Source: Klebsormidium nitens
Taxonomy: Eukaryota > Plantae > Klebsormidiophyceae
Assembly: GCA_000708835.1 (NCBI GenBank)
Contig: DF236954.1
Coordinates: 1-64,000, forward strand
DNA length: 64,000 nt
Direction of reading: 5' to 3'
The first letter of the stretch is position 1. Every line of letters starts with the position of its first letter. A model generated the notes under the pieces. It worked only from the letters and a program-made list of their open reading frames with translations, was not told where the DNA came from and did no database searches. Below, piece after piece: positions 1 through 21,759 of this stretch. Both the position numbers and the translations under genes were made by a program.

Positions 1-3000
1 TTTTGGGTTTTTGCTGGCGGCAGTCAACGACACTTTGAAGCACCGTGCCAATGCACGTGCTTCGAGGCTCTGTACAGAAGCCTGGCTCAACTGGCCTAGC
101 ATGATCTCCAGGTGCACTCGGCTTTCCTGCTCATCATGCTGAGCAATCAGCTCGAAGCAAACAGCTCAAGCACCGTTTGGATAAAAACCCATCAGATGCT
201 TAGGCAAACAGCCGCTGCCTTGGAGAGCGCATTGGCTCAGGCAGGAGCAAAACAGCTCGGTGTCTTGACTGCTGCCACTTGCTCCCGAAAAATGACACAA
301 ATGATGAGGGAGACTTACCGATTTCAGGGGGGCTGTGTTAGAGCCCAGAACACTGCAGTTTGATCGAACAACCTGCGAGAACTAAACAGACACAAAGGTC
401 GACAAAGTGACTCTTAATGCGAGCCACTTGAGGCTTTTAAGTCTGTCGCTCGTGTCCTGGACGGTATCGTGGTTCTTAAAGCAACCCAAGATCATGAGTA
501 GCAAAAAAGCTACGAAGCCCCCTGAGCTAGAAAGACGAAGGACAGGGTTCACATCCCCAGAGTCCGCCTACCCGCTATACATGATAACTCTCGTAAAAAG
601 ATTCTCAATGATGCATGACATATCATTGAATGCCAGCTCCCCGCCAGCTCCAGTAGTTGTCTTTGTTCAATCCTAACGTGTTTTCCATTCACTAGTCGAA
701 AGGTGCCCAATCTAGAGACTGACAAATTGAGCCCATGACTACCGCCCGTCCAAAAGTTACCTACTTCTGAACAAAGCGCCAGACCTGTGGTGTTTGGCAA
801 ATGTATGCAATCGATCGACAGAGACCTTGTGCTGACAGTTATAATTTTGTGTATTAGAAGCAAAGGGCAACCAACAGCAAAGACTTGCAAGACACTCTTC
901 CGATCCTATGAATATCTTACCTGCCGCTTTCAGATCCTTGAAGCGTTCTTACCTGCATTTTGTGAGCCTGGAACAGGCAATACTACCTGAGCTGGAGAGG
1001 TTGGAGAGGATTACCTGGCACGCCACGAGTTCGCCCCGCAGACTGCGTGAAGACCCCAAGCCCAGTCGCGGTGATGCTCCGTCCAATGAACCTTGTTGAC
1101 TAACGCCTGCCTGCACGGAAGACTTTTCAGCGTTTTGTTGATTTGTTGCACCGGCCCAGGCTCAGCTAGGACCTAGACAATAGAGTATCCCCAATAGAGT
1201 CTAGACTAGGAAATACAAGGCCATGCCACGTGTGCAAGGAGAACCAATGAAATGCAAGAACTGGGGATTGCGGCGAGGTGACGTGACCGTCACCAACCAC
1301 CATGTCGTGACGCGGCCGGCCGCGTGAAACCGCGCGAAGGTACCGCGCCCGCGGCCTCAGTTAGACAACTTATGACTACTATGGACTTGGGATTTGCGGG
1401 CGCGGCCGCGCGGCTGCGCGCACGGCCGGCACACCACAGTAGTGCATGCCTGCGCGCCCGCTTGAGCCCTCCTCCAAATCGACGGACGCCGGTTGTGAGG
1501 CAGCGTCATGCTAGCAACGCGCCCCATAAAAGCCACGCGGTCACTAATTGCTAACGGCCGGTCCTGCTTGAAGCTGAAGGCGCAAAGCGCTTGCAAACAC
1601 AAGCAACGAGCATGATTTTTTTCATCTTTTTCAAAGTTTCACGTTAGAACATTCCTGTACAGTCGTAACTCATGACTGAGCAAACTAATCCGTTGCAAAA
1701 CAAGTCTAGAGCAAGCCGAGGACGGCTTTCAGGATGGTCCTGTCAATCAAGTTAGTGAGGCGGCGGCAGGCCGCCTGGCGCCCCGTCTGGCTCGCGCCTT
1801 CGTTCTGGAACGCCGCCGATCCGGGGGCCAGATCGGAACATTCCGCTTTGTTGAATGACCAGTGGTTGGTGGACAAGGCGGACCGAGGTCCCAGTCTGAG
1901 GTCCTACAACTGATACGGGGAACTTGTACCAAAAAATGAGTTGACTTCCACGAGTTAACTCCGAGTTAAAGCATCAATGGCCCATCCGCCTATTTTCTCG
2001 ACTTCGTGGGGTAGCTCCGTTCTGTTCGTCACACGTAGACCTGCGCCTGGATCATGTTGTGCAATCAGATTGATCAAACCCGGCGCATCAGTTCTATTGT
2101 TGCGTCCAAAGGCAAAGCGCCTGCGTGCACATATTGGACGAGAGTGCCGCCCAGTCTCTTCCATCACCCTCCAGAATACATTAGTAAGACGGCAGGCCAG
2201 AGTCCTTCTCTGTTTCCTTCTCCTTCGCGACATGATTCTTCTTACGATCAACCTCACATCAGATTCTTTGCAGGAACGTACATTCTAAAAGAACGGGCGG
2301 CTTTCTCCATGCGTCGGAGCTTGACCGTTAACAGTAGAATTGACTGGTTAAAGCACCTCCCCGTGGTGAATTCCAAAAGCCCAAAGGCAAGTGCCGGGTG
2401 ATTCTCGAGTAGCGCTTCCGGGTCTGACAAGCCTCGCCCCCAACATGCGCCGCCAAAGTCGTCTACCGACCAGCGGTGAGCGGAGTCCGATTGCTATCCG
2501 ATGGATCCTCCAGGTTTGCTAGGTTCTGCTGACACTGCTCTGCCCGACCAGAATCAACTGGGCCCACGTGCAGTACTTGCAGCCTGTTCCGCACTCCCTT
2601 GAGTCCGGGGTTTCGCGAAAGAACTAGGGGGGCGAGCTGATCCGGCCCTTGAGAGACCGCCAATGATCATGACCAGCGACTTCGTCAGCACGAAATTGTT
2701 CTCAATCAACTTTGGCCGGCTGCCACGTCAGCCCAAAGATGACGAGCGCTGCAACAGTCAATGGGCATCAGAATACACGAAGAGGTTGTCATTGGCTTCC
2801 GTCCGACGGGCGCAGGCGTAACCAGTGAGCACGAATGTCGTTGGCAACATGCGTGGACCAGCTATTGTACAGGGGAACGAGGAGCCTTGGAAATACATGA
2901 TGCTCGAAGCTGGATCGAAACAACGTGTCAAAATTAATTTGCTTTTCGCAGTGATGATGTTTGTGGACAATTTTTTTGCAGCCGACCGCCGTGAATGCAG

Positions 3001-4337: not shown

Positions 4338-6692
4338 AAGGGAAGCGGACGTCCGGAGTGAAACTTTAAGGGGTGCCCAGAGTGGGTCGACCGGGGGGAG
4401 AGAGAGATCTAGGGAGGAGGAGCCCGCAGGCGGCGCAGGAGAGGGAGCTAGGGGACTAGAGTTGGGAGGGGGCGGCTCAGGAGTGCTCGGGAGAAGGAAC
4501 GGAGACTCTGGAATGGGGAGTCCGAGGCGAGGCAGGAGAAAGTTGAAAGGGCTCTGCGCAGGAGGGGAACGTTCGATGCAAGACTGCTCGAGGAGAGGGA
4601 ACGGGGGTCAGGGAAGAAGAGCGGGAATGCAGGGCAGGTGCAATGGCAGGTGCCCGGGAAAAATTCTCGAGAGATCGGTTCAGGGGGGCGGACGGCTGAA
4701 AATGCTCAGTCGCCACGTGGAGACAAAGATCCGGGGGTCGGGATTGGCGAAAATACACAAGCTAAGAAGGGAGGAACGAGAACGCGCCACGAGAACACGC
4801 TTTTTAAAGCGTAAGTTCACATGATACTCCAGTACGATCTCGAAGTAGAACCTAGCCTTGCTTGGTCGACGTCAACTTCGTTCAACGGCAAGCAAATCAA
4901 AATCTTCGTTATGATCGAGACAACAAGCAAAGCGGAGGAGCAAAAAGGAGCACCGAAAAGGGAAAGGATGAGTGCACGAGGAGAAAACGAGGTTCACCTA
5001 TAGACACTTCCTGCCAACTCAGCCTGATTGTGTCAGGACATTTCTCAGTGCTCACTAATGCAGCCAGGTAGGGAAGCAGATTTAGTGGTTATGGCAATAA
5101 GAATGACACCGGAGTCGCATTCTGTAGCTGGAGTTTCTAAACATCATCTCGATGACAGACAGCTTCATGTGGTGCTTTCGCAAGGCAGCAAGCTTCAAGA
5201 ACACCAGCATTAATCAAAAGGCTAAGTGCAGTCGGGTAAGAAGGTCTACTTCATCTTCTTGTGCCGATCAAAGAAACCTTCAAGGCAGGACGAGGATTCT
5301 GACACGGCCTTGCAACCTTGTCGGCCTCTCAGATTCCTGAGTCATGCCCGCATCGGACCTTTCCTTCCTGACGTGGTGGGACAGAACGACCGCTGCAGAT
5401 CATGAGAGATTCGATCGAGATTTAAACTGGTAATCTCAAGGACCCAAAGCCCAAGTGCCGTTGAGTCGCTTTGGCTATGTATGTTATTGTGACAGAGCTT
5501 GAAGGAACACTGGAAGTAAAGTTTCGTGGCCTCTTCGATGACTCCAACCAAAGTCACCCTGAGCTGCCGTATGAAGTTTTTCCACGCACCTGCTTTGGAC
5601 GGGGTTTTTGTGTCGACCGACATTTTCTCATTGGATAAGCGCAGGACAGAGCCTCGGGCGCGCTCTGTTCTGCCTTTCCTTGATGAGGACGACAAACATG
5701 TTATGGTCCCGGCTGCAATCGTGACTAACAACAGCTTTTGGATTCGAGGAAAGTTTGCCAGGGCCACGTTCCAACGTGGAACGAAGCAACAAATGGAACG
5801 GTTGGAAGGACGGTGACGTTATCTACACTCTACCCAAGCGTTCGATCTCAGATCTACCAGCTTGCAGGCATGTTTTCTCAATCTTACTTTACATCTGGTT
5901 CCTGTTGTGATGTCACTGTGCTTCGCGTTCTTGGCAATCGGATTCTGGCGCGAACTAGAATCGGATGGTGCATCTGGGCTAAGCTGTTGGCGCCAACCGT
6001 ACAGCCGGTGCGGCGAAGCTGGAGGAAGCGCTGAAGATCGTGGCGGGGACAAATGAAGGGAGCATCCACTGCTGCAGGTGCCCCGCGTCCTGGGGACCAA
6101 GCAGGCCTAGAGCGACTGTACCCCTAAAACCCTCTGAAAAGCAGGATTATGCTGAAACACACGGTTTGCAGTTCCATATAAGACGAAGATCTTTGTACGA
6201 AAAGACTTCGAACGAATTCAAAATCTCGTCCAGAATTTGATAGGCTGAAAGTCGCATTTGGCCTGGAGGTGGACCGGCTCCGAGTCGAGCTTGAAGTATG
6301 GCAGGGCTCGTGGATGATCCGCGGACCAACAGAAAAGGGTGAGCATCAGAACCAGCGTTTCTACGTTCCAAAATTGCACAAATCAGATCTCTTCGAACTG
6401 TGGTGCATCTAAATACAACTGATCCTTCAATTGCAAGCATTCTCCGCCCGTTATTGGATCCTGCTTGATCAGCTGTGGCATTGCCAATGATCTCGTGTAA
6501 CGCTTTCATTGATCAACCAGTGGTAGGTGCTGTATATCCATTTCCTCCGAGCATTCATTGGAAGCTCGAACTCTCAGACTCAAGCATATTTAGTACGTGG
6601 CAGCCGAATCAAGACCTTTTACCCTGGTTGTTTGCAGCAGGGACTACCGAAGCTGCTTCGACATCGCGGAAACATCTACATCGTTCTGACCA

Positions 6693-6888: not shown

Positions 6889-7062
6889 TGGAGCTGGCGG
6901 GACTCGAACCCGCATCTCTCAGACGCGGCCCATCCGGGCGGTGCTCGGAGCCTCATTCTGGAGGCCCCGGCAGGGACTTGGCCACTCGCGCGGGGCGAGG
7001 ACCTTTTGCCCCTAGGCATATCAGCCCTTGTCTTGGCGCTCTACCAATTGAGCTACAGCCCC
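6889..7062 (-). ncRNA. tRNA-Ala-like structured RNA gene, copy 1 (174 nt; anticodon loop replaced by a multi-hairpin insert)
   Basis: Minus strand: GGGGCTG-TA-GCTC-AATTGGTA-GAGC-G-CCAAGAC ... GTCTGAG-AGAT-GCGGG-TTCGAGT-CCCGC-CAGCTCC-A. Acceptor stem with G3:U70, intact D and T arms, A and B boxes. CGC then TTTT follows the 3' end; TATA-like TTTATATA about 40-48 nt upstream. Confidence 0.85.
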
Positions 7063-8971
7063 TCTTCCATACGTGCGGTGTTTTGAGGATAAGGTGTCCC
7101 CATATATAAACAGCGCCAATTGTCACTCGATGATCTGTGGGCCGAGCTTGTGTGACTTGAGAACCGTTGATCGAGCTGGGCAAGGACATTGACGATCCGA
7201 TGGTGCAATCGATAGAAACCATCAGAAGCAGTCTCTAAGCCCGGACAGTCCGTGACGAGGACCAAAATGCTCAATGAGCTGGACTTCTCAAAGCTAGAGC
7301 GAAGCCTGCACAGAGGATCGATTCATTGCAGGATGTCGAAGGCTAGAGGAGCGCTCTGTGACAAAATTATGGCCCAGCAGCATAGATTGGTCTGCTTGCC
7401 GGATACCACTCATGAACTGCCTTTCCGTGAAATATGGAGCTTTTATTGCTTATCTCTGGTAGTGGACCTTACAAATCATGCGAACGGAGAAGAGATTGAA
7501 GAGATTCGATATTGCTGTGCTCTGATTGCTTAGACCGTTTGGAATTATATGTTCCAATGATCCATCGAGCATCGAGGAGCTCGTCAAATACTCCGCTTGT
7601 TCCATGAGTGTTGGTGTCGAAGTGACAGTCTGCACGGATGCTCCAATATTGCAAGCATCCATAAATTAGATGCTAAACTAGGGTTGATCTAGAAACGCGC
7701 ACTCCTGCAAGACCAGCGAAAGCAGAATTCGGCGCCATCCTCGCATAAGGCGTTCGCAATGATGTGGCCGTGTACGAACCGTATGTATGCACCCACATGA
7801 TCAACGCTTGAAATGAGCGAGAAAAAAAGAGCAACATCTTCCACATATCAGAACTGGACAGGCTGGCATGCCACATGCACCCCGCGGTGCATATGTTTTC
7901 TAGCTTAGTAGAGCATGCACATTGACCGACTAGAGCTGCATGACATAATTGGCGGGATGCATCAGGACATCTCATGAGCCGTTCGCATTAACCCTGGCAC
8001 TTTCAGAGCAGGCTAGCTCACCAGCCGGTCTGCTCGACAACTAGTCTACAGAACTGTTGACAATTACCGCAGTCACGGCCGGGCAGATTGCTCATGCATC
8101 GATCCAAAAGCAGGAAACCATGCGCGAGTCCACAAAGACTATTGCATTTCACTAACTTGCAACCTTGCCGTCTTTGACCAATCCGCATCTGTACAGTATC
8201 CGTAGGGCGCTGTTTTCATCCGACAAACTTTTTCTCGATAAACTTGGCCCATCCCGAGCTCCTAACTTACATATTCGATCTTCCAACAAAACTAGCCTGT
8301 CAGTCTTGCTGGTTGTATCACTCTACGACTTCCGAGCCCTTCGTATCTTGCATAAGCAGGTTTGTTGAACACGGCTCCTCGCACTGATCCTATCAAGCTC
8401 CTTCTTTCAAACCCTTAAATATGATTGCATTGTCGCTCATCGAGAAGACTACGTTTCGTGAACCATATCTGCTGAGCTATATCTGAGCAACGGTCAAAGG
8501 CACATGTTTGCACTAAGCTTCGGGAAACAAGAGTTGTCGAACATTGGGCTTAAGTGCCGCCACCGGTCCGTCCGCCTGTACGGCAACAAAGCAGGGCTCT
8601 GACATCGAAGGACCCGACAAAAGCTAATGCTGAGAGTGTGACAAATGCATGCGCTTCAATTGTGGCGAAAGCATTCTGGTGTCTGCCTGGTTGAAAAATC
8701 CATCTCTGTGTTGGACCTTTGCCGAAAAAATGGACGGAGGCGGGGTCGAATCCAAGCAGATTGCTTCATTGGTCCAGGTATGCACATTTACACCGTTGAA
8801 AAGTAAGCTCAGATGACAAGATTCATACTAAAGGACGAGGAAATTAACCCTTGGATGCCAAGAATCTGACCATTGACGACGATAAGATACAACAAAGTGA
8901 TGGAAACCAGAGGAAACGTGAACGCCGACGCTTAACAAAAAAGGCCAACTCGTTCCAGCTAAAAGAACTTT

Positions 8972-11900
8972 TCACAAAGCCTCAAGATTGGACACGAAGC
9001 TAGACCGGCTTAGCAAGAAGGTGACCTGCAAAGGGCTGAAAAAGGAGCCTACGTGTGCGGGTAACAAGAGTTTCCGTCTTCATCGCGTCGACAACGACAC
9101 GATATACTTCGTAGACCGCGCAAATTCCCAAACGAGCTCACCAGAAGTATAAAGTGCATCAGTTGGCGGACTGCATCCGTGACGTCGTTGGAGGTGCGCG
9201 CGTACGAGGCCGCCCGGAAGGTCGTGATGGCGGCCGCCAAAAGGTCGCCCTGCATCAGGCGGGCCACGTAGTGCGCGTCGTGCCTCAACAGGCACGCGCG
9301 CAGGAACTCGACGGCTATCATCGCGACGCGCGGCTCCGCGTGCCCGGCCAGCCGCGCCACCGCTTCGAGGGCGCCGTGACGGAAGACGAATGGCCTGGAA
9401 TAGAAGATTGGGAAACGCTGGATAGGGACTCTGTGTTGGTTGATTACACTGACGTTGTATTTGAAGCGGGTTCGTTCCGTCAAATTCAGTTCCCCTCGCG
9501 GAACGTCTGCGGACTGGGAAGGGGGGTACTTGGGAAGTGCAGTGAAACGATTTTGTTAGTTGGTCGGCAGGAACGAGCACGAGACACCTGTTCTTCTCGT
9601 TTCCGTGTCGCAAAGATTCAGGACGTGACTGCTTGGTTGAGCAACCTGACTTTGTTAACGTACAGCACCCAAACGGCGCACTGACCACAGGTGCAAACTA
9701 TGGGAAAGTATCGAAAGTGCGCCATCCAAGGGAACAGTGTTGAATATGACTTCACTGAACAATGGTGGGTTGGCAATTTGATAATCCAAGAAAAAGTCAA
9801 GAAAAACACATGGAAAGTGAGTTCCTTGAAAGCTTTACCAGAAGGAGCGGATGCGTCAATCCTAACTGCAGCTCGTGCTTAATCCGTGAGAACACAAAAA
9901 CAGATGGCAGCCTTTCGTGACATGAGCCAAATTCTTCAAGGCTTCTTTTGCCGCATACAAAGGATGTCGCTTAGAAAAGAAAAGCGCTTCTCCTGCAAAC
10001 CGACCAAGAGCCTATTGAATGCAGATACCCAGATCGAAATGCGAGTGGCACGTACCGAAGCCTGGTGCCGTGGTGACGCACGCAGTACATCAGCAGCGCG
10101 CAAGCGCGGACCACCCCATCGATGTCGTCAGGCGAAACGCGGGTTGAAGCGCTGACGTCAGCGTTCGCTTGCGCCACCGTCTGCTTGATGATGACGTCAA
10201 GGAGCGGGTCGAGGCAGAGCCAGTCAGACGTCTGCACGCAGTATAAAATCAAAGTGGCGAGCGATGAGCGCGTGTTTTCTGGTGAAGGGCGATGCGGCTT
10301 CAAACAAGGTGGGCATCTGTAAAGAGCCGGACGGAATCATAGGAGTAGCTGACTCCTCTGGAGGGGAGTGAGATCTGCTGGTTTCCAGAGGTAAGGAGAC
10401 ACCTATTATCTGCACCCGTCAAGTGCGTGCTGCGTCGACACGCCTGCTAAGTAGTTTCTTCAAGCAACGTTTCTAACTGCAAAGATATAGAACCAGTACA
10501 AGCAAGCCTGGGCGTACTTTCTTCGCAGGACACTGGATGAACACGTCGCACACTGCTCAGGCAGTCTAACAATTGCTCACAAATGCCTGTTGCTGCTATG
10601 CACTGCAGCATGTGGCTCTGCAATGCGCGGCTAAAGTACCGGGTCTGTTACTAAGACGGGTCATAGAGGAGGTTGAATCAGTCGACACGATTCTAAGCAG
10701 TCGCTCAAGCAACTCAGTGGGTGAGATTGCCGACCACACGTTTATCCCAACAATGATATCTGATCCAAAAAAGTTTGCACTTCATATCGCCCCAAGGTGT
10801 GTTGACCGCTGCTCTAGCCTCGACCGTCAGCGGCGTCGGTTAAAAACTCTGCTAGTTCAAAGCAGACGCTTTGCCGTCAGCTCACCGGTACGAGGTCGAT
10901 AAGAGCCCGGGTGAGCACGAGGAGCAGCGTCTGGAGGGGCGCGTCGTCGGTGCGGAGCATCTCGCCCACGACGCAGAACCGGTCGATGATGCCCCGGAGA
11001 TACTCGATGTGCTTCCGGAGCAACGCGACGTAGCGCGTCATGAGCATGAGGACACCCGCGGACGCGAGCCAGAGTGACTGGTCACGGTTGTCCTTGGGCG
11101 CGAAGCACGCGCGGAGCGCGCGGCGCAGGCAGCGGAAGGACAGGGCCCGGCGGTAGAACTGCTTAACCTGCGGAGGAAGTGGAGAAGGCTGGAAACAGAC
11201 AGCGAAATCAGTAAGGTGTGCTGCAAGCGGAGCAATGTGACGCCCATGTGGCAGATAATATACGCGGACTCACGAAGAGAGGGAAATTTGAGGAAGAGGT
11301 TTTCAAGCTCAACTTCAGCGCGGTTGGTTAAAGCTTAGGGCGAATGTCAGGGTGCGGTGCGCATTGTTGTTGCAGGTTAGACTCATCCTTTGCATCCCAT
11401 TCTTGGGCAGAACACGTGTTCAACGCCGTGCTTTCCTCATCGCCTAGGGTACACTTCCAAGCATTGGTTGACGAAACGAGCAGCGAAGCGGTTGTCAAGA
11501 CTCAACATGACTCCCGTGCCACAACTCGGCAGCCAACACAAAAGAATGGCGAAAAGGAGTACAGTGATTTGAACAAAGTGTGTACGATACAAGAAGCTTT
11601 CTGCTCGGTCTGCCGTCAAATGAATATCGCCAAACGGCCAGAATCGATGTTGCTCACTGCCAAATCAACTTGTTTGAGTTTGGCGCAGGAGCAGCTCACG
11701 TGACGAGGGGAGAGGTACTCGGTTGCCGTATTGAGAGCTTCGACCAGAGAGTTCATAACGTTCTGAAGGCGCGGCCCGCTCTTGAGCCCCGCTTTGCACC
11801 CCTCCTTCACGCGGTCAAGGTCCTTGTTCAATATACTCTGCACGTAAAGCAGGGTTACTGACTCGGACATCGGGCACCACGTTCGGCTTGCCGTCTTGTC

Positions 11901-13161
11901 ACCTTTGTGGGTAGCAGTCCTTGCAGCGAGTTGAAAGCAGTTGGCTGAAAGGGCGTCGTCAAGACTCTCGCCATTCCAAAGGTGTTGCGGAAGAGCTTTC
12001 AGAGTCAAACAATCTTGTGGAGTTTTGAACGAGAAAAGCTAGGCTGGCTGCTATAGCGGTCCTCCGAATGCGGTCCTCAGATGCTGTTTTGCGTCAAAAA
12101 GGAAACCCACTCGAGGGACTGCAGACACACCTTCCAAGAGTATTGATGTTTTCTGTTGCATTCAGCATCAGCCTCTGCGAAGCCCCTTGGAGTTGCAATG
12201 GTTCCACCCGGTACCGCTTCTAGGAGGTCCAGCCACTCTTCCAGAGCTTCCAGCTTCGAGCTCCTGTCGGCCTGCAAGGGACACAGACTGGTTTGAGATT
12301 GGCGGCGAGAGCCTCTGTATGGAAACGCACGCCCAGGAGAAACTCATCTGCTCAAGAGGTTGCACAAGCTTTAGTACCTGGATATTTGGTTGAATACAGT
12401 CCTTGGTTAGATTCATTCTCCCTTGAATCGAGCAGCAAGTGACCACAATTGCGTTGTGCTTTCTTGGATATTGATGCTCCAGATATCAAGAACGGACGCC
12501 AGATGAGTCCTTCCTCAAATCCCAGTAGAACCGCAATACCGACCTGATAAAGGAGCTGTGGCTCCTCTTCTTCTTGGTAAACCCACGCGGTACTCTCGTC
12601 TCCAGCGAGAACCTTTCCCTCGCCTGTTGCTGCGCCAAAGTCGTCGTCGTCCATCTCCGCGCCATCATCATCGTCGTCCATCTCTGCGCCAGCATCGGGG
12701 TCGTCCATTTCTGCGCCAGCATCGGGGTTGTCCATTTCTGCGTCGTAATTGGGGTCGTCCACCTCACCCCTCTCCGGCTCCTCTTTTCGCTCAATGACCG
12801 CTTCGCCGTCTTTTGTGGGCAACCTTGTGCACGCATTCTCCTCCCAGGGGGGTCCTCCAAAACCCAGAACAGGGCTGTTGGGCGCCAGCTCTCCTAGAAT
12901 GGTCCGCTGCAGAGTGGGAAAGGGTGTTCCGCGCAGCGCCAACTTGTGGATGGGGGCCATCTCCTCGTACTGGTGCGGCTGAGGGATGACGGGTGAAGAC
13001 AGAGCCTTCTGAACCGGCTCAGCTTTCCTGCACGTGTGGGAATGACAGGTATCACTAGACGTTTCAGACCTTTGGCAGATTGATGTATGCAGAGAGCAGG
13101 GATCTAGATTGTACTTGCAATCGCCAAGAGAATTTGTAAAGAACCTGGAAGGTTTGGCCAT
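8972..13161 (-). CDS. Divergent PP4R3/SMEK (PSY2)-like protein phosphatase 4 regulatory subunit, multi-exon; 5' end and last exon uncertain
   Basis: Exons with canonical splice sites at 9142-9394, 10056-10231, 10886-11167 and 11700-~12010 join in frame: ...VRACALLMYCVRHHGTRLRPFVFRHGALEAVARLAGHAEPRVAMIAVEFLRACLLRHDAHY... This follows the SMK-1 pattern ICELLCFCV.HH.YRIK...E.YLV.AAVRF.R..L...D..Y. Upstream exons at ~12130-12270 and 12545-13161 carry an acidic repeat. Confidence 0.7.
12646..12765 (-). repeat. Coding 27-bp tandem repeat (about 4.5 units) encoding DAGAEMDD(P/D)
   Basis: On the plus strand GTYGTCCA recurs at 12646, 12673, 12700, 12727 and 12754 (period 27). Confidence 0.9.
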
Positions 13162-16300: not shown

Positions 16301-17601
16301 ACCGTCCTGGTCTTCCACGTACTCCTGCTGTCCGCAATTCGGACAAGCGGGCCAGAATCCGCTTGCCACGAAAGCGAAGCAGAGTGACGCCACACGAAGA
16401 GATAGAAGAGTATATTTTATCGAACTCCGCAGGAAATAAACATGCCTGCAAGCGGATCGATGATCATGAATTCGAATGAATGGGCATCAGGCCCATCATG
16501 AAAATGTCAACGACTTTAGCATGCGCAATATCTTCCAATTGCTTTTGGTACTTTAACACTGGACATTGCAATTTGAGACATAGCTCAGCCACTTATATGT
16601 CCGAGTGCCGTGAAATCTCCTCATTCAGGGTTGCACTATGCTTGTCGTCTTCATATCAATGAAAAGCTGCAAACCCTTAATGCATCGCTCATTCGATCCA
16701 AAAGATGATTAAGCCTGAAATCATACGGCCACGTTGCGGTCAATTGGCTCCAGGGTTTGTGTTCATGCATCCGGCCAGTCATCTTATGCAGCTCTCGGAC
16801 GAGGATGTTAATTCGCAGTGATAAGCCGCACGGATGCCAGTCTTGCACGAGATTGAGCCATCCGCTTTTGACTCCAAAATAATATGTTGAAGATTCGTTC
16901 ACCTGGGTCCACTGCAGCCATGATTGGGCCGCGTGCATGCGAGAACATCCATACCCTTCCCATCAAAGAGGCAAAACTGCCCTTACGATGTCTCAGCATC
17001 TAATTCGCCGTCCCCTTCTTGGTTTTGTAGATAGCCACTTTCACAAATATAAAAGCGGACCGTCACGGTCACTTCCATACTTTCGCACAGAAACAAGCCA
17101 GTCAAATATATAATATTTAAAAATCTCGATACGCGGTGTGATGATTGAACGGGAAACACATTTCAAGCGTCCTATCATCGCATGTCTTTAATCTTCAATC
17201 TTATTCTGGGTCGCATTCTCCCGTTTATTGAGTACGAAGGCCTCTTACTTCATAACAAGGTTCTGATCATAGTTTGGCAAATATGCTAGTGGCAATGACT
17301 CATTCACACAACGCTCGTGCTAGAACAAGAAACCTTTTTTGGTAAGCAATGCTTCTAACCCCCGTGGAATGGGCTTTGCCCAGCTCCAAGACAATCCAAA
17401 GTGCAAGTTGACGTTCTGATCGTCTCACGAACCTCTGGGCTTCAAAATTTTCCTCAGATCGGACTATCGAAGCTTCGGTGACCGTCCCCAGCTCGATCAA
17501 CGATTGTCGAATCGCGAAAGCATTTTGGCCCACACTCAATTCGAGGTTCCACTAGTGCTGCTTATATTTGGAGATATTGTGTACAATCGCACCTTTATAG
17601 C

Positions 17602-17838
17602 GGGGCTGTAGCTCAATCGGTAGAGCGCCAAGGCCCGAAAGAGGGTGATATCCCTCATGATCAGAGCTGGAAGCTCAGGGGTTACAATCCCAGGGGTGAT
17701 ATCCCTCAGGTTTACAAGATTAGGGGTGACATCCCCAAGGGGCGAAAGCTCCTCGTTGCCGGGGCCTCGATTGGGGCTCCGAGCTTCGCCCAGATGGGCC
17801 GGGTCTGAGAGATGCGGGTTCGAGTCCCGCCAGCTCCA
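17602..17838 (+). ncRNA. tRNA-Ala-like structured RNA gene, copy 2 (237 nt; expanded hairpin insert)
   Basis: GGGGCTG-TA-GCTC-AATCGGTA-GAGC-G-CCAAGGCCC ... GGGTCTGAG-AGAT-GCGGG-TTCGAGT-CCCGC-CAGCTCC-A. The 5' 32 nt differ from copy 1 at one base and the 3' ~36 nt are identical. TATA-like TTATATT about 35-40 nt upstream; first T4 about 29 nt downstream. Confidence 0.85.
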
Positions 17839-18838
17839 CGCTGTTTGGTCCATCAACAAGCAGGAACTTTTAGAATCGAACGAGAGTCTGCTGAGAGTGA
17901 CAGCTGTTCACGCGGTGTTCTGAGCAGCTTCAACTTTTCCACGAAGTCCCCGCGATCGCTGGGAGCTGCAAGGAAATAAGAAGAGCTTCGTGCTGAACGT
18001 GCCTCGTTTGAGAGGTCGAGCGTACTCCAACGAAGGGCTGGAGGGGATGAATGTACAGAAAATTGGTTGAAACCGAACAGGGTTACCCTCTTCGTCGCTG
18101 AGCTCATGACATATAGCTCAATTGCTCACACGTTTACGATCCAGAACAAACTGACATGCCCAATAATGGAGCTGCCTTTGCTTCTAGCGAGCCAGGAGCG
18201 TCTGCTCCGGGCAGAGCCTTGTGGGCAGACCGACCTGTTCATCCACATGACGGTCAAGGACTTTTGCTGGTCCGTTTTCCGAACAGACGGATAAACTACG
18301 CGTCATGTTGTTGCATCCTTGAACAGGACCCGAGGAACTGCTTTGACATCACCGAAGCGATTTGGAGACGGCTCACTCTCCGAGGGGAAACTCTCGTTAG
18401 GAATCCGCTCGGGGCACCGCTCAAACTTGCAATTCCGGGCAGCCGCAATCACCTAGAAATAAGACGAAAAGAGCACGCCGCCCTGAAAAGCATACTTCAA
18501 GGGAATAGTTGAAGGTGAAATTAACAGCGTATTGGTGATACAGGCTTTTCGACCCGGCAGCTTGTTTTAACAGGTTTGAAGTAAAAGTAAGAGTAACACC
18601 AGGCAGTGTTAAAGTGCGAGATGTGAAATCTGGTTTTTGACTGGCGCTCTTGGCACGAAGACTTCTTCCCCGCTTTGCAGAGCCTGGTACCTTTACTGGC
18701 TTGTGCAGGATGACAAGCTGCGACGGCCGAAGATCCGCGTGATGCACGCAGATCACCATTTAATTCTGCGTGCCTTACGGGGTCCGCAGACCTTGAGGGA
18801 GGCGCTAGCGATCGAGGCGGGGACGAATGAAAGAGAAA

Positions 18839-19889: not shown

Positions 19890-21149
19890 TTAGGTTGAGG
19901 CTTTCCAGGTTCTGCGTTGCTTGGAAGAGTGACTGAAGTGTGCTGGATGTGTCAGACCCCTCTCTTCAAACGCCAGATCAACACATAGATCTTTCAGTTT
20001 GGAGAGCACCTTAAAAGGACTTGACGATTGAAGGCTTGAAAAGAAAAGAAGACCTAGATCCAGTTTCTCGATGCCCGGTGGCAACTGGGACACAAAGCTT
20101 CTGACAGGAAGAGGCGTCATTAGTCCGTCAAGCGTCACAGTCAGATTCTGCAAGGTAGGGCACTGACGGAGAATAGGGGCCACAATCTCCGTCCAGCTAT
20201 CCCAAGCGGAATCCCAGGCCGCGAAGGTCTTCAGGTGACTGCAAGGCTGGACAAATGTCACCGGGTCCTCCAGACAACTGACTGTAAGCTCTAGCTCTTG
20301 CAGTGCAGGGGCTTCCAATCGAAGAGAGTCGCAATTAACGGCCAGCCTGTGCAGGCTGGGTGCTTGAACATCAAGAGAAATGAAGTACGCTCCTAAAGTT
20401 TGAAGATCGAGAGATCTTAGCGTCTCTGACTTGACGAAGCACGTATTAACCTCCGGATCTGGATTACCAGTTCCAGAGTCATCAGACTTCAATTCGACGT
20501 GTACATTTGTCCAAAGAGTCTCAAGGAAACGGCACCTCTGCAGCAGATTGTGGACCGCTGCGACAGACAGGTTTCCATTGACGAATCGCACGTGCCTTAC
20601 TTCACTGATGGGAGCCGCTGTTAGCACTTCGATAGTGCCACGAGAGGTACTGAAATGGTTGAGACCTGAAACCGAGAGGAGGATGTCGATGATGTTTCTA
20701 CTTGGTTGAGGGTCATCTACCACAAAGTCGGCGCATGAAGGACCACCCCAAATTGATCCCGGTTCGTCCTGCATGCAGTATACTGAGACCACTTTTGGCA
20801 GGCGCTTGAGCAGCGAGTCACTTGAGATGAGACTGTGCGGAATATCCTCCTGCTTTGCGGCGATCAACAGTTCCAGTTTCTTACAAGAGAAACTCTGATG
20901 GTTCACAAAAACCAGGAACCCTTGCGCCTCTGCTGCGCTTCTCAGGGGCCAAACCAGGCTTTCTACCTGGTGCGCCAACCCCTCAAACCGCCGGCAAACG
21001 AGGAGCGCTTGAATAAAATCCTTTGCATGTTCGACGCTCGGTAACCAGCTCCAAAGTTGCAAGCGGCTTGGGCCTGCAACTTTTCCCAGTACGCGAATGA
21101 TCAGATCATCCGGAAGCAGATCAAAAGGGTCGGCTTCGATCAGAGCCAT
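19890..21149 (-). CDS. F-box protein with LRR-like C-terminal region (apparently single exon, about 419 aa)
   Basis: Uninterrupted ORF. N-terminal PFDLLPDDLIIRVLGKV...ALLVCRRF F-box motif; LxxLxL repeats (LRSLDL, LHRLAV, LQELEL, LQNLTV). Confidence 0.75.
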   Translation of the reverse strand: MALIEADPFDLLPDDLIIRVLGKVAGPSRLQLWSWLPSVEHAKDFIQALLVCRRFEGLAHQVESLVWPLRSAAEAQGFLVFVNHQSFSCKKLELLIAAKQEDIPHSLISSDSLLKRLPKVVSVYCMQDEPGSIWGGPSCADFVVDDPQPSRNIIDILLSVSGLNHFSTSRGTIEVLTAAPISEVRHVRFVNGNLSVAAVHNLLQRCRFLETLWTNVHVELKSDDSGTGNPDPEVNTCFVKSETLRSLDLQTLGAYFISLDVQAPSLHRLAVNCDSLRLEAPALQELELTVSCLEDPVTFVQPCSHLKTFAAWDSAWDSWTEIVAPILRQCPTLQNLTVTLDGLMTPLPVRSFVSQLPPGIEKLDLGLLFFSSLQSSSPFKVLSKLKDLCVDLAFEERGLTHPAHFSHSSKQRRTWKAST

Positions 21150-21759
21150 CAAAGGAGCCTGCTAAGTTTCCAATCGCCAAGAACCAAGCTGAACTTAAGG
21201 CTTATTTTCGAACCTGCTTGTCGGGAGTGACATTGGCGCTCTCTATGAAGTACCCCCAATTCAAATGAAGGCTTCGTAATATCTCTAGCTACCAGTGCGC
21301 TTCTGGCCCTGATCAACAGCGAGAAACCTTGAGAAAATGGAATCACCTGAAGCTCACAGGTGCTCAAAACGCGTGTCTTTCTTGGCTTGCTGGATACACC
21401 CCTGGAAGTTATTAAAACTGGCCGCCTGCATCTGAATTCTCATCCAGATCATCGTTTGCACGTTTCTGGCTGGCCCGTACGGTCGCTGGCTCTCATAAGT
21501 TAGTCGCGCGCCCGTCGCACACGCGGCCGCATGGCAGCATAGCGCCTGAGACTCAGGCCATGTTCGCAGGGTTTAACTGGGTTTTACCTTTGCGGTTGCG
21601 CGCGTATTATCACAGCCTAGTGACTGCGACAGTGAGGCGGCCGCGTAGGCGAGCCGCTCTGCGCAAGTCTTCAGAGGCCGACTTGCTTCAGAATAGTTCA
21701 TAAGCTGGCATCCCGCGGGGCCGCTGAGGCGCTAGCCTAACTACAGTCACCTTTAAAAA

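Follow-up and report, generated by a model that had tools for sequence, protein, structure and literature searches.

Copy 2 of a putative small RNA gene family in Klebsormidium nitens with an alanine-tRNA body, no anticodon arm and a duplicated promoter

Features of tRNAs are reused for Pol III transcription, for processing by RNase P and RNase Z or for stability in BC1/ID (from tRNA-Ala), mascRNA, the tRNA-miRNA transcripts of gammaherpesviruses and engineered 'tRNA scaffold' RNAs. The engineered scaffolds carry a payload in place of the anticodon arm, and this use of a whole tRNA as a frame was devised by RNA engineers. The gene described here (copy 2) is located in a window of 64,000 nucleotides, positions 1 to 64,000 of contig DF236954.1 of the alga Klebsormidium nitens, and resembles the engineered molecules in that a payload replaces the anticodon arm. 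The natural tRNA-derived RNAs contain a partial tRNA or carry their cargo outside of it, whereas here a complete core encloses the cargo and a multi-gene nuclear family is present. No description of a natural nuclear gene family of such design was found in the literature. On the evidence presented below, copy 2 is probably a paralogue that has been maintained within a lineage-specific family of small nuclear genes, the RNA of which has an intact alanine-tRNA core and a structured insert replacing the anticodon arm.

Copy 2 and its paralogue (copy 1) are arranged head to head with their first bases 10,540 nt apart, and copy 2 is longer by 63 nt (Table 1); the opposite orientation, the spacing of about 10.5 kb and the longer insert given in the preliminary description are thus confirmed. 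In an exact-pattern search, the 5' and the 3' tRNA half each occurred twice in the window, namely in the two copies, with no occurrence expected by chance. Long open reading frames (ORFs) are scarce in the window, which fits a nuclear eukaryotic genome. A protein search with an antisense ORF across copy 2, aimed at spurious ORF calls over members of the family, gave no match.

Table 1 Features of copy 2 and of its paralogue, with positions in the window
Feature	Position	Strand	Remarks
Copy 2, tRNA-Ala-bodied gene without anticodon arm	17602-17838	+	237 nt; read directly; halves identical or nearly identical to those of copy 1
Copy 1, paralogue	6889-7062	-	174 nt; Rfam tRNA, 44.3 bits
Upstream block of copy 2	17487-17502	+	around -115; the same 16 nt in copy 1 at 7165-7180
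USE-like element of copy 2	17527-17537	+	GGCCCACA core; copy 1: 7133-7143
TATA-like box of copy 2	17562-17569	+	distance to base 1: 39 nt (46 nt in copy 1)
Promoter region of copy 1	7104-7180	-	homologous to that of copy 2
5' tRNA part of copy 2	17602-17634	+	acceptor strand (17602-17608) and D arm; 31 of 33 nt as in copy 1
A-box-like stretch of copy 2	17609-17620	+	
5' strand of the insert-closing stem	17631-17637	+	pairs with 17800-17806; fold constrained to keep the tRNA body
Variable payload	17641-17739	+	three short GC-clamped hairpins, UGAUAU/UGACAU loops; motif search
Hairpin motif cores in copy 2	17643-17654, 17694-17705, 17724-17735	+	
30-nt tandem unit	17674-17742	+	2.3 copies; Tandem Repeats Finder, score 75, 71% matches
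Conserved 3' insert module	17757-17808	+	two hairpins, then the 3' strand of the insert-closing stem; aligned with copy 1, 46/54 columns agree
3' tRNA part of copy 2	17809-17838	+	variable loop, T arm, acceptor strand, A73; 30/30 identical to copy 1
Perfect B box in the T arm of copy 2	17817-17827	+	
3' trailer of copy 2	17839-17871	+	CGCT, T3 17844-17846, first T4 17868-17871

Read directly, both copies have the acceptor stem, the D arm and the T arm of an alanine tRNA, including A73 and, as third acceptor pair, the G-U pair that confers alanine identity (G3:U70); the anticodon arm is absent. The core tertiary partners are complete (U8, A14, G18-G19, A15 with U48, T loop UUCGAGU). The tRNA-like ends are almost invariant, as first described: the only two differences between the copies are located in the 5' part, one at D-loop position 17 and the other a G-U/A-U swap in the closing stem. 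Similar to canonical nuclear tRNA-Ala genes, both copies possess an acceptor stem, a D arm, a T arm, A and B boxes and a T-run terminator, and CCA is not encoded in the gene. In contrast to canonical tRNA-Ala genes, with or without an intron at 37/38, they yield no anticodon stem-loop under any single-intron model, and they contain a partly conserved insert of 117 nt (copy 1, according to Rfam) to 180 nt (63 nt more). The Rfam tRNA match to copy 1 skips these 117 nt at the place of the anticodon arm; the insert of copy 2 is longer and this gene consequently falls below the Rfam tRNA threshold, with only 20.4 bits and a wrong 3' partner.

The 26-nt 5' half was also used as a query against metagenome contigs. 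It had 69 matches, nearly all of them insert-free ordinary tRNA genes and most of them 73-nt tRNA-Ala genes; many encode CCA. Since the same 5' half occurs in ordinary tRNA-Ala genes, the core represents the canonical alanine-tRNA sequence. None of the 69 matches has this insert or belongs to the family, and a query with the junction of insert and T arm had no match in the metagenome contigs. In one metagenome contig (L005, about 1031-1140, plus strand), this tRNA 5' half, its first base A rather than G, runs into non-tRNA sequence; truncation of the gene or a large intron in a tRNA gene may be the cause.

About 34% of the tRNA genes of K. nitens have introns (PMC13578239). This frequency favours a genuine tRNA gene whose intron, of unusual length or in the wrong place, is spliced out to give a decoding tRNA, and so do the tRNAs called in both copies by ARAGORN in intron mode and one solution for copy 1 that gives CGC, an alanine anticodon. 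However, in this solution, the best one, CGC of copy 1 corresponds to CGG in copy 2, and the ARAGORN intron models assign 'Arg CCG' to both copies from non-homologous triplets, with mismatched stems and mature lengths of 82 and 94 nt. When all ways of keeping a 17-nt anticodon arm were listed, neither copy had a single-intron solution with five stem pairs or with U33, and ARAGORN without introns found no tRNA. We consider an intron-bearing decoding tRNA very unlikely.

A non-tRNA domain of large size between two tRNA-like halves is also the architecture of tmRNA (SsrA), with which the gene shares G3:U70 and a very similar acceptor stem and T arm. The alanine identity and the resemblance of acceptor and T arm to the tRNA-like domain of tmRNA could point to a eukaryotic analogue with a role in freeing stalled ribosomes, cytosolic or organellar, and the Rfam tmRNA model scores 26.9 bits on the ends alone. 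This score is below the gathering score of 47, however, and the whole body is skipped; a tmRNA search with ARAGORN found nothing. The sole short reading frame common to both copies has a terminal tail that does not resemble the known tags, and no reading frame is conserved in the variable insert. Unlike tmRNAs, the gene has a full D arm, and its setting is nuclear and of Pol III type. A tmRNA-like function is hardly credible.

The similarity of the two copies extends beyond their tRNA parts. The preliminary description had taken the flanks to be unrelated apart from a few elements and copy 2 to have a Pol III context of its own, neither of which was borne out. The upstream regions (-150 to -1) share 64% identity, more than any shuffled control (mean 50%, maximum 55%), and blastn detected homology from -148 to +48 (E=3e-14) as well as a colinear island at about -870 (E=0.002). 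Downstream, identity amounts to 62% over positions +1 to +50, equal to the shuffle maximum, and to a random 50% further on. The upstream similarity is concentrated in three blocks: the 16-nt block, the GGCCCACA element and the TATA-like box. A coding exon behind the upstream conservation was ruled out, as the two upstream regions have no similarity at the protein level. Because the upstream and promoter region is homologous between the copies, copy 2 is a DNA-level inverted duplicate with an inherited promoter; as shown by these alignments, both genes descend from one ancestor by a local inverted duplication of DNA that included the promoter. A 47-nt repeat (85% identical) is located about 1.1 kb downstream of copy 1 (5906-5952) and about 1.2 kb upstream of copy 2 (16348-16394), in the same orientation relative to the genes and with a 24-nt neighbour (5852-5875 and 16438-16461). 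An ancestral tandem unit of about 2.36 kb would account for this arrangement, as would a dispersed repeat.

This homology of untranscribed upstream DNA also bears on a retroposed origin. A tRNA-derived SINE or another retroposed copy would be in line with a multi-copy family, a tRNA-derived sequence and internal Pol III boxes. However, the 3' half of the tRNA is located at the 3' end of the unit, the orthologue described below is syntenic, and there is neither a target-site duplication nor a tail. The longest word shared by the flanks has 5 nt, a length reached by 474-482 of 500 shuffles, in agreement with the earlier report of no target-site duplication, and no A-rich tail was found. The earlier rejection of neutral SINE decay thus stands; the lack of duplication and tail and the upstream DNA common to both copies for practical purposes exclude retroposition, to which we assign a negligible probability.

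In plants, the distance between the upstream sequence element (USE) of snRNA-type genes, with the consensus TCCCACATCG, and the TATA box sets the choice of polymerase (PMC11961915); Arabidopsis genes have a spacing of 23-24 bp when transcribed by Pol III and of 32-34 bp when transcribed by Pol II (PMC8287931). A TATA-like box, as reported earlier, is present upstream of both genes, and the gap between it and the USE-like element is 25 bp in copy 2 and 24 bp in copy 1, about the Pol III-type spacing of Arabidopsis. The 10-mer GCCCACACTC (17528-17537) agrees with TCCCACATCG at 6/10 positions and its counterpart in copy 1 at 7/10, a consensus that may not be the one of this alga. Across the window, the USE-like pattern followed after 24-30 nt by a TATA box is confined to the two genes, with no occurrence expected. 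In the loci examined for the USE comparison, Rfam gave no match at gathering level, hence no snRNA gene. The plant type-3 Pol III genes (U6, U3, 7SL and telomerase RNA) likewise have a CCCACA-containing upstream element, a TATA box at about Pol III-type spacing and a T-run. They differ from the present genes in having neither a tRNA body nor internal tRNA boxes, and the match to the USE is here partial and putative. Taken at the sequence level, the conserved body and promoter fit a functional, undescribed tRNA-derived RNA.

At the 3' end, CGCT follows A73 in both copies, as had been noted. The downstream T-run held for copy 1, which has a T4 at +4; copy 2 has only a T3 directly after the gene (+6) and its first T4 at +30. 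Three inverted repeats were observed in the surroundings. One of 23 nt (6693-6715/6838-6860; 96% complementary, arms 122 nt apart) begins 29 nt past the 3' end of copy 1; a small MITE or a hairpin is conceivable. The second has arms of 43 nt (18839-18881/18997-19039, 88%). The third has arms of 24 nt (13234-13257/13307-13330, 96%) and underlies chance-level matches to plant miRNAs in Rfam.

Vault RNAs combine A and B boxes inside the gene with upstream elements, ends that pair and a middle part that varies. The same combination is found here, in accordance with a vault-RNA-like or other RNP scaffold RNA in which the tRNA-like ends would mainly serve as Pol III boxes and terminal stem. The ends are, however, more than boxes, namely a complete tRNA core with alanine identity, and the Rfam Vault model had no match at E up to 10. 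A literature search for papers naming both the major vault protein and Klebsormidium found none. We regard a vault-like RNA as highly improbable.

The insert of copy 2 comprises a variable part and the conserved 3' module. In folds that keep the tRNA core, all hairpins are placed within a multiloop, and the closing stem, 4 pairs of which are kept in copy 1, continues the position of the anticodon stem. The variable part is 39% identical between the copies, i.e. at shuffle level, and not alignable. Copy 1 has a single hairpin of the UGAYAU-loop type (7015-7026). The stems of these hairpins are of the GGG/CCC type, and a motif search of the window found elsewhere only one chance-level near match. 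Much of the additional 63 nt is explained by the 30-nt tandem repeat; as shown by the repeat analysis, the insert of copy 2 grew after the gene duplication, in part through tandem duplication of a 30-nt hairpin unit. A reading of UGAUAU and CUGA as C/D boxes was ruled out; the motif is placed in G-C-closed hexaloops and lacks the G6 of box C. Both hairpins of the 3' module, the second at 17788-17799, are predicted in the folds of both copies. No compensatory, two-sided base-pair change was found in the insert between the two full copies compared. The sole change in the stems of the 3' module is one-sided, from U-A to U-G, and these stems therefore receive no covariation support. The pentamer CCAAG is present at the start of the insert (17628-17632) and again at the end of the variable part (17735-17739), with counterparts in copy 1 at 7032-7036 and about 6977-6981; the repetition may be due to chance or be a trace of an old insertion.

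Downstream of copy 2, an intron-less ORF of 420 aa (19890-21152, minus strand) was classified as F-box/LRR-like from an N-terminal F-box-like motif recognized on visual inspection and from the labels that Pfam assigns to its relatives; the ORF itself had no Pfam match. A relative of this ORF with 73% protein and 78.5% nucleotide identity is encoded on the Logan contig L070 of run SRR23617307. The contig ends inside the 3' half of a tRNA-like gene on the expected strand and side. The 29 visible nucleotides match at 28 positions, and the single change affects T-loop position 59. This 3' half is followed by C and a T5 run, and the first 22 nt of the copy 2 trailer lie within the blastn match to the trailer of the orthologue. 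The intergenic DNA between the F-box-like gene and the RNA-gene island of L070 is not alignable. Judged by sequence and position, the related alga has an orthologue at the syntenic site, and a break of the contig at precisely this place points to repetition of the 30-mer in the genome of the relative as well. The same alga has several F-box paralogues of 40-51% identity, some in tandem; their contigs contain no member of the tRNA-like family. Between the two copies of K. nitens, an exon of PP4R3 (phosphatase 4 regulatory subunit 3) was recognized at 9049-9483 on the minus strand (Pfam, E=1.4e-6), with further exon-like ORFs up to about 13161 and an acidic 27-nt tandem repeat at 12603-12764. 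A search with the protein of the PP4R3 exon for a contig of the relative near copy 1 had no match.

Comparison by domain revealed that substitutions are not uniform, as anticipated in the preliminary description: 61/63 positions of the tRNA parts are identical, the 3' insert module is conserved at 85%, and the variable insert is at shuffle level. All three substitutions in the tRNA parts, counting paralogue and orthologue, affect tRNA-variable positions (17 and 59) or keep the pair. By the alignments, conservation since the duplication is limited to the promoter blocks, the tRNA core and one insert module, a divergence pattern that supports selection acting on the tRNA-like body while the payload varies. 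The preliminary description had set such selection against segmental duplication; the divergence by domain fits the former, the copies arose by duplication at the DNA level as well, and both hold true.

The DNA-level duplication is also in accordance with a dead gene, in which an insertion in the anticodon region destroyed a tRNA-Ala that was later segmentally duplicated, the conserved ends being due to gene conversion or chance. The non-alignable part of the insert and the lack of compensatory changes between the copies point in the same direction. Conversion of one copy by the other could have contributed to the near-identity of their ends; identical stretches of only about 30 nt at a distance of 10.5 kb are, however, a poor conversion substrate. 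Furthermore, the tRNA parts have remained nearly identical while the flanks decayed to 64% or to random, the promoter blocks and the 3' insert module are likewise conserved, and the orthologue of another species keeps 28 of its 29 visible bases. We consider a dead gene unlikely.

For the favoured reading, a maintained paralogue with a tRNA core, the following course is conceivable. Copy 2 would be transcribed by Pol III from the USE-like element and the TATA-like box, aided by the internal A and B boxes, and transcription would stop at the downstream T-run. The ends would be trimmed by RNase P and RNase Z, and CCA would be added as for tRNAs. Alanyl-tRNA synthetase would likely charge the RNA via G3:U70 and A73. 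Having no anticodon, the RNA cannot decode. The tRNA core most likely acts as a scaffold for processing, stability and export, which would present as payload the conserved module of two hairpins together with short UGAYAU-loop hairpins in varying number, perhaps to a binding partner.

If expressed, the family would mean that a streptophyte alga keeps RNAs with a whole tRNA as the frame for another RNA structure. To this, copy 2 adds the promoter architecture, the growth of the payload by tandem hairpin duplication and the syntenic orthologue. With the alanine identity retained, it becomes testable whether non-decoding RNAs are charged in a eukaryote. Charging with alanine in vivo would establish a new class of aminoacylated non-decoding eukaryotic RNAs, with the alanine identity as a working part and not a mere processing handle, an outcome we hold to be quite doubtful. 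If charged, the RNA might for example use the synthetase-dependent step as a ticket for mitochondrial import with the hairpins as cargo, or act as an alanine donor or decoy outside decoding.
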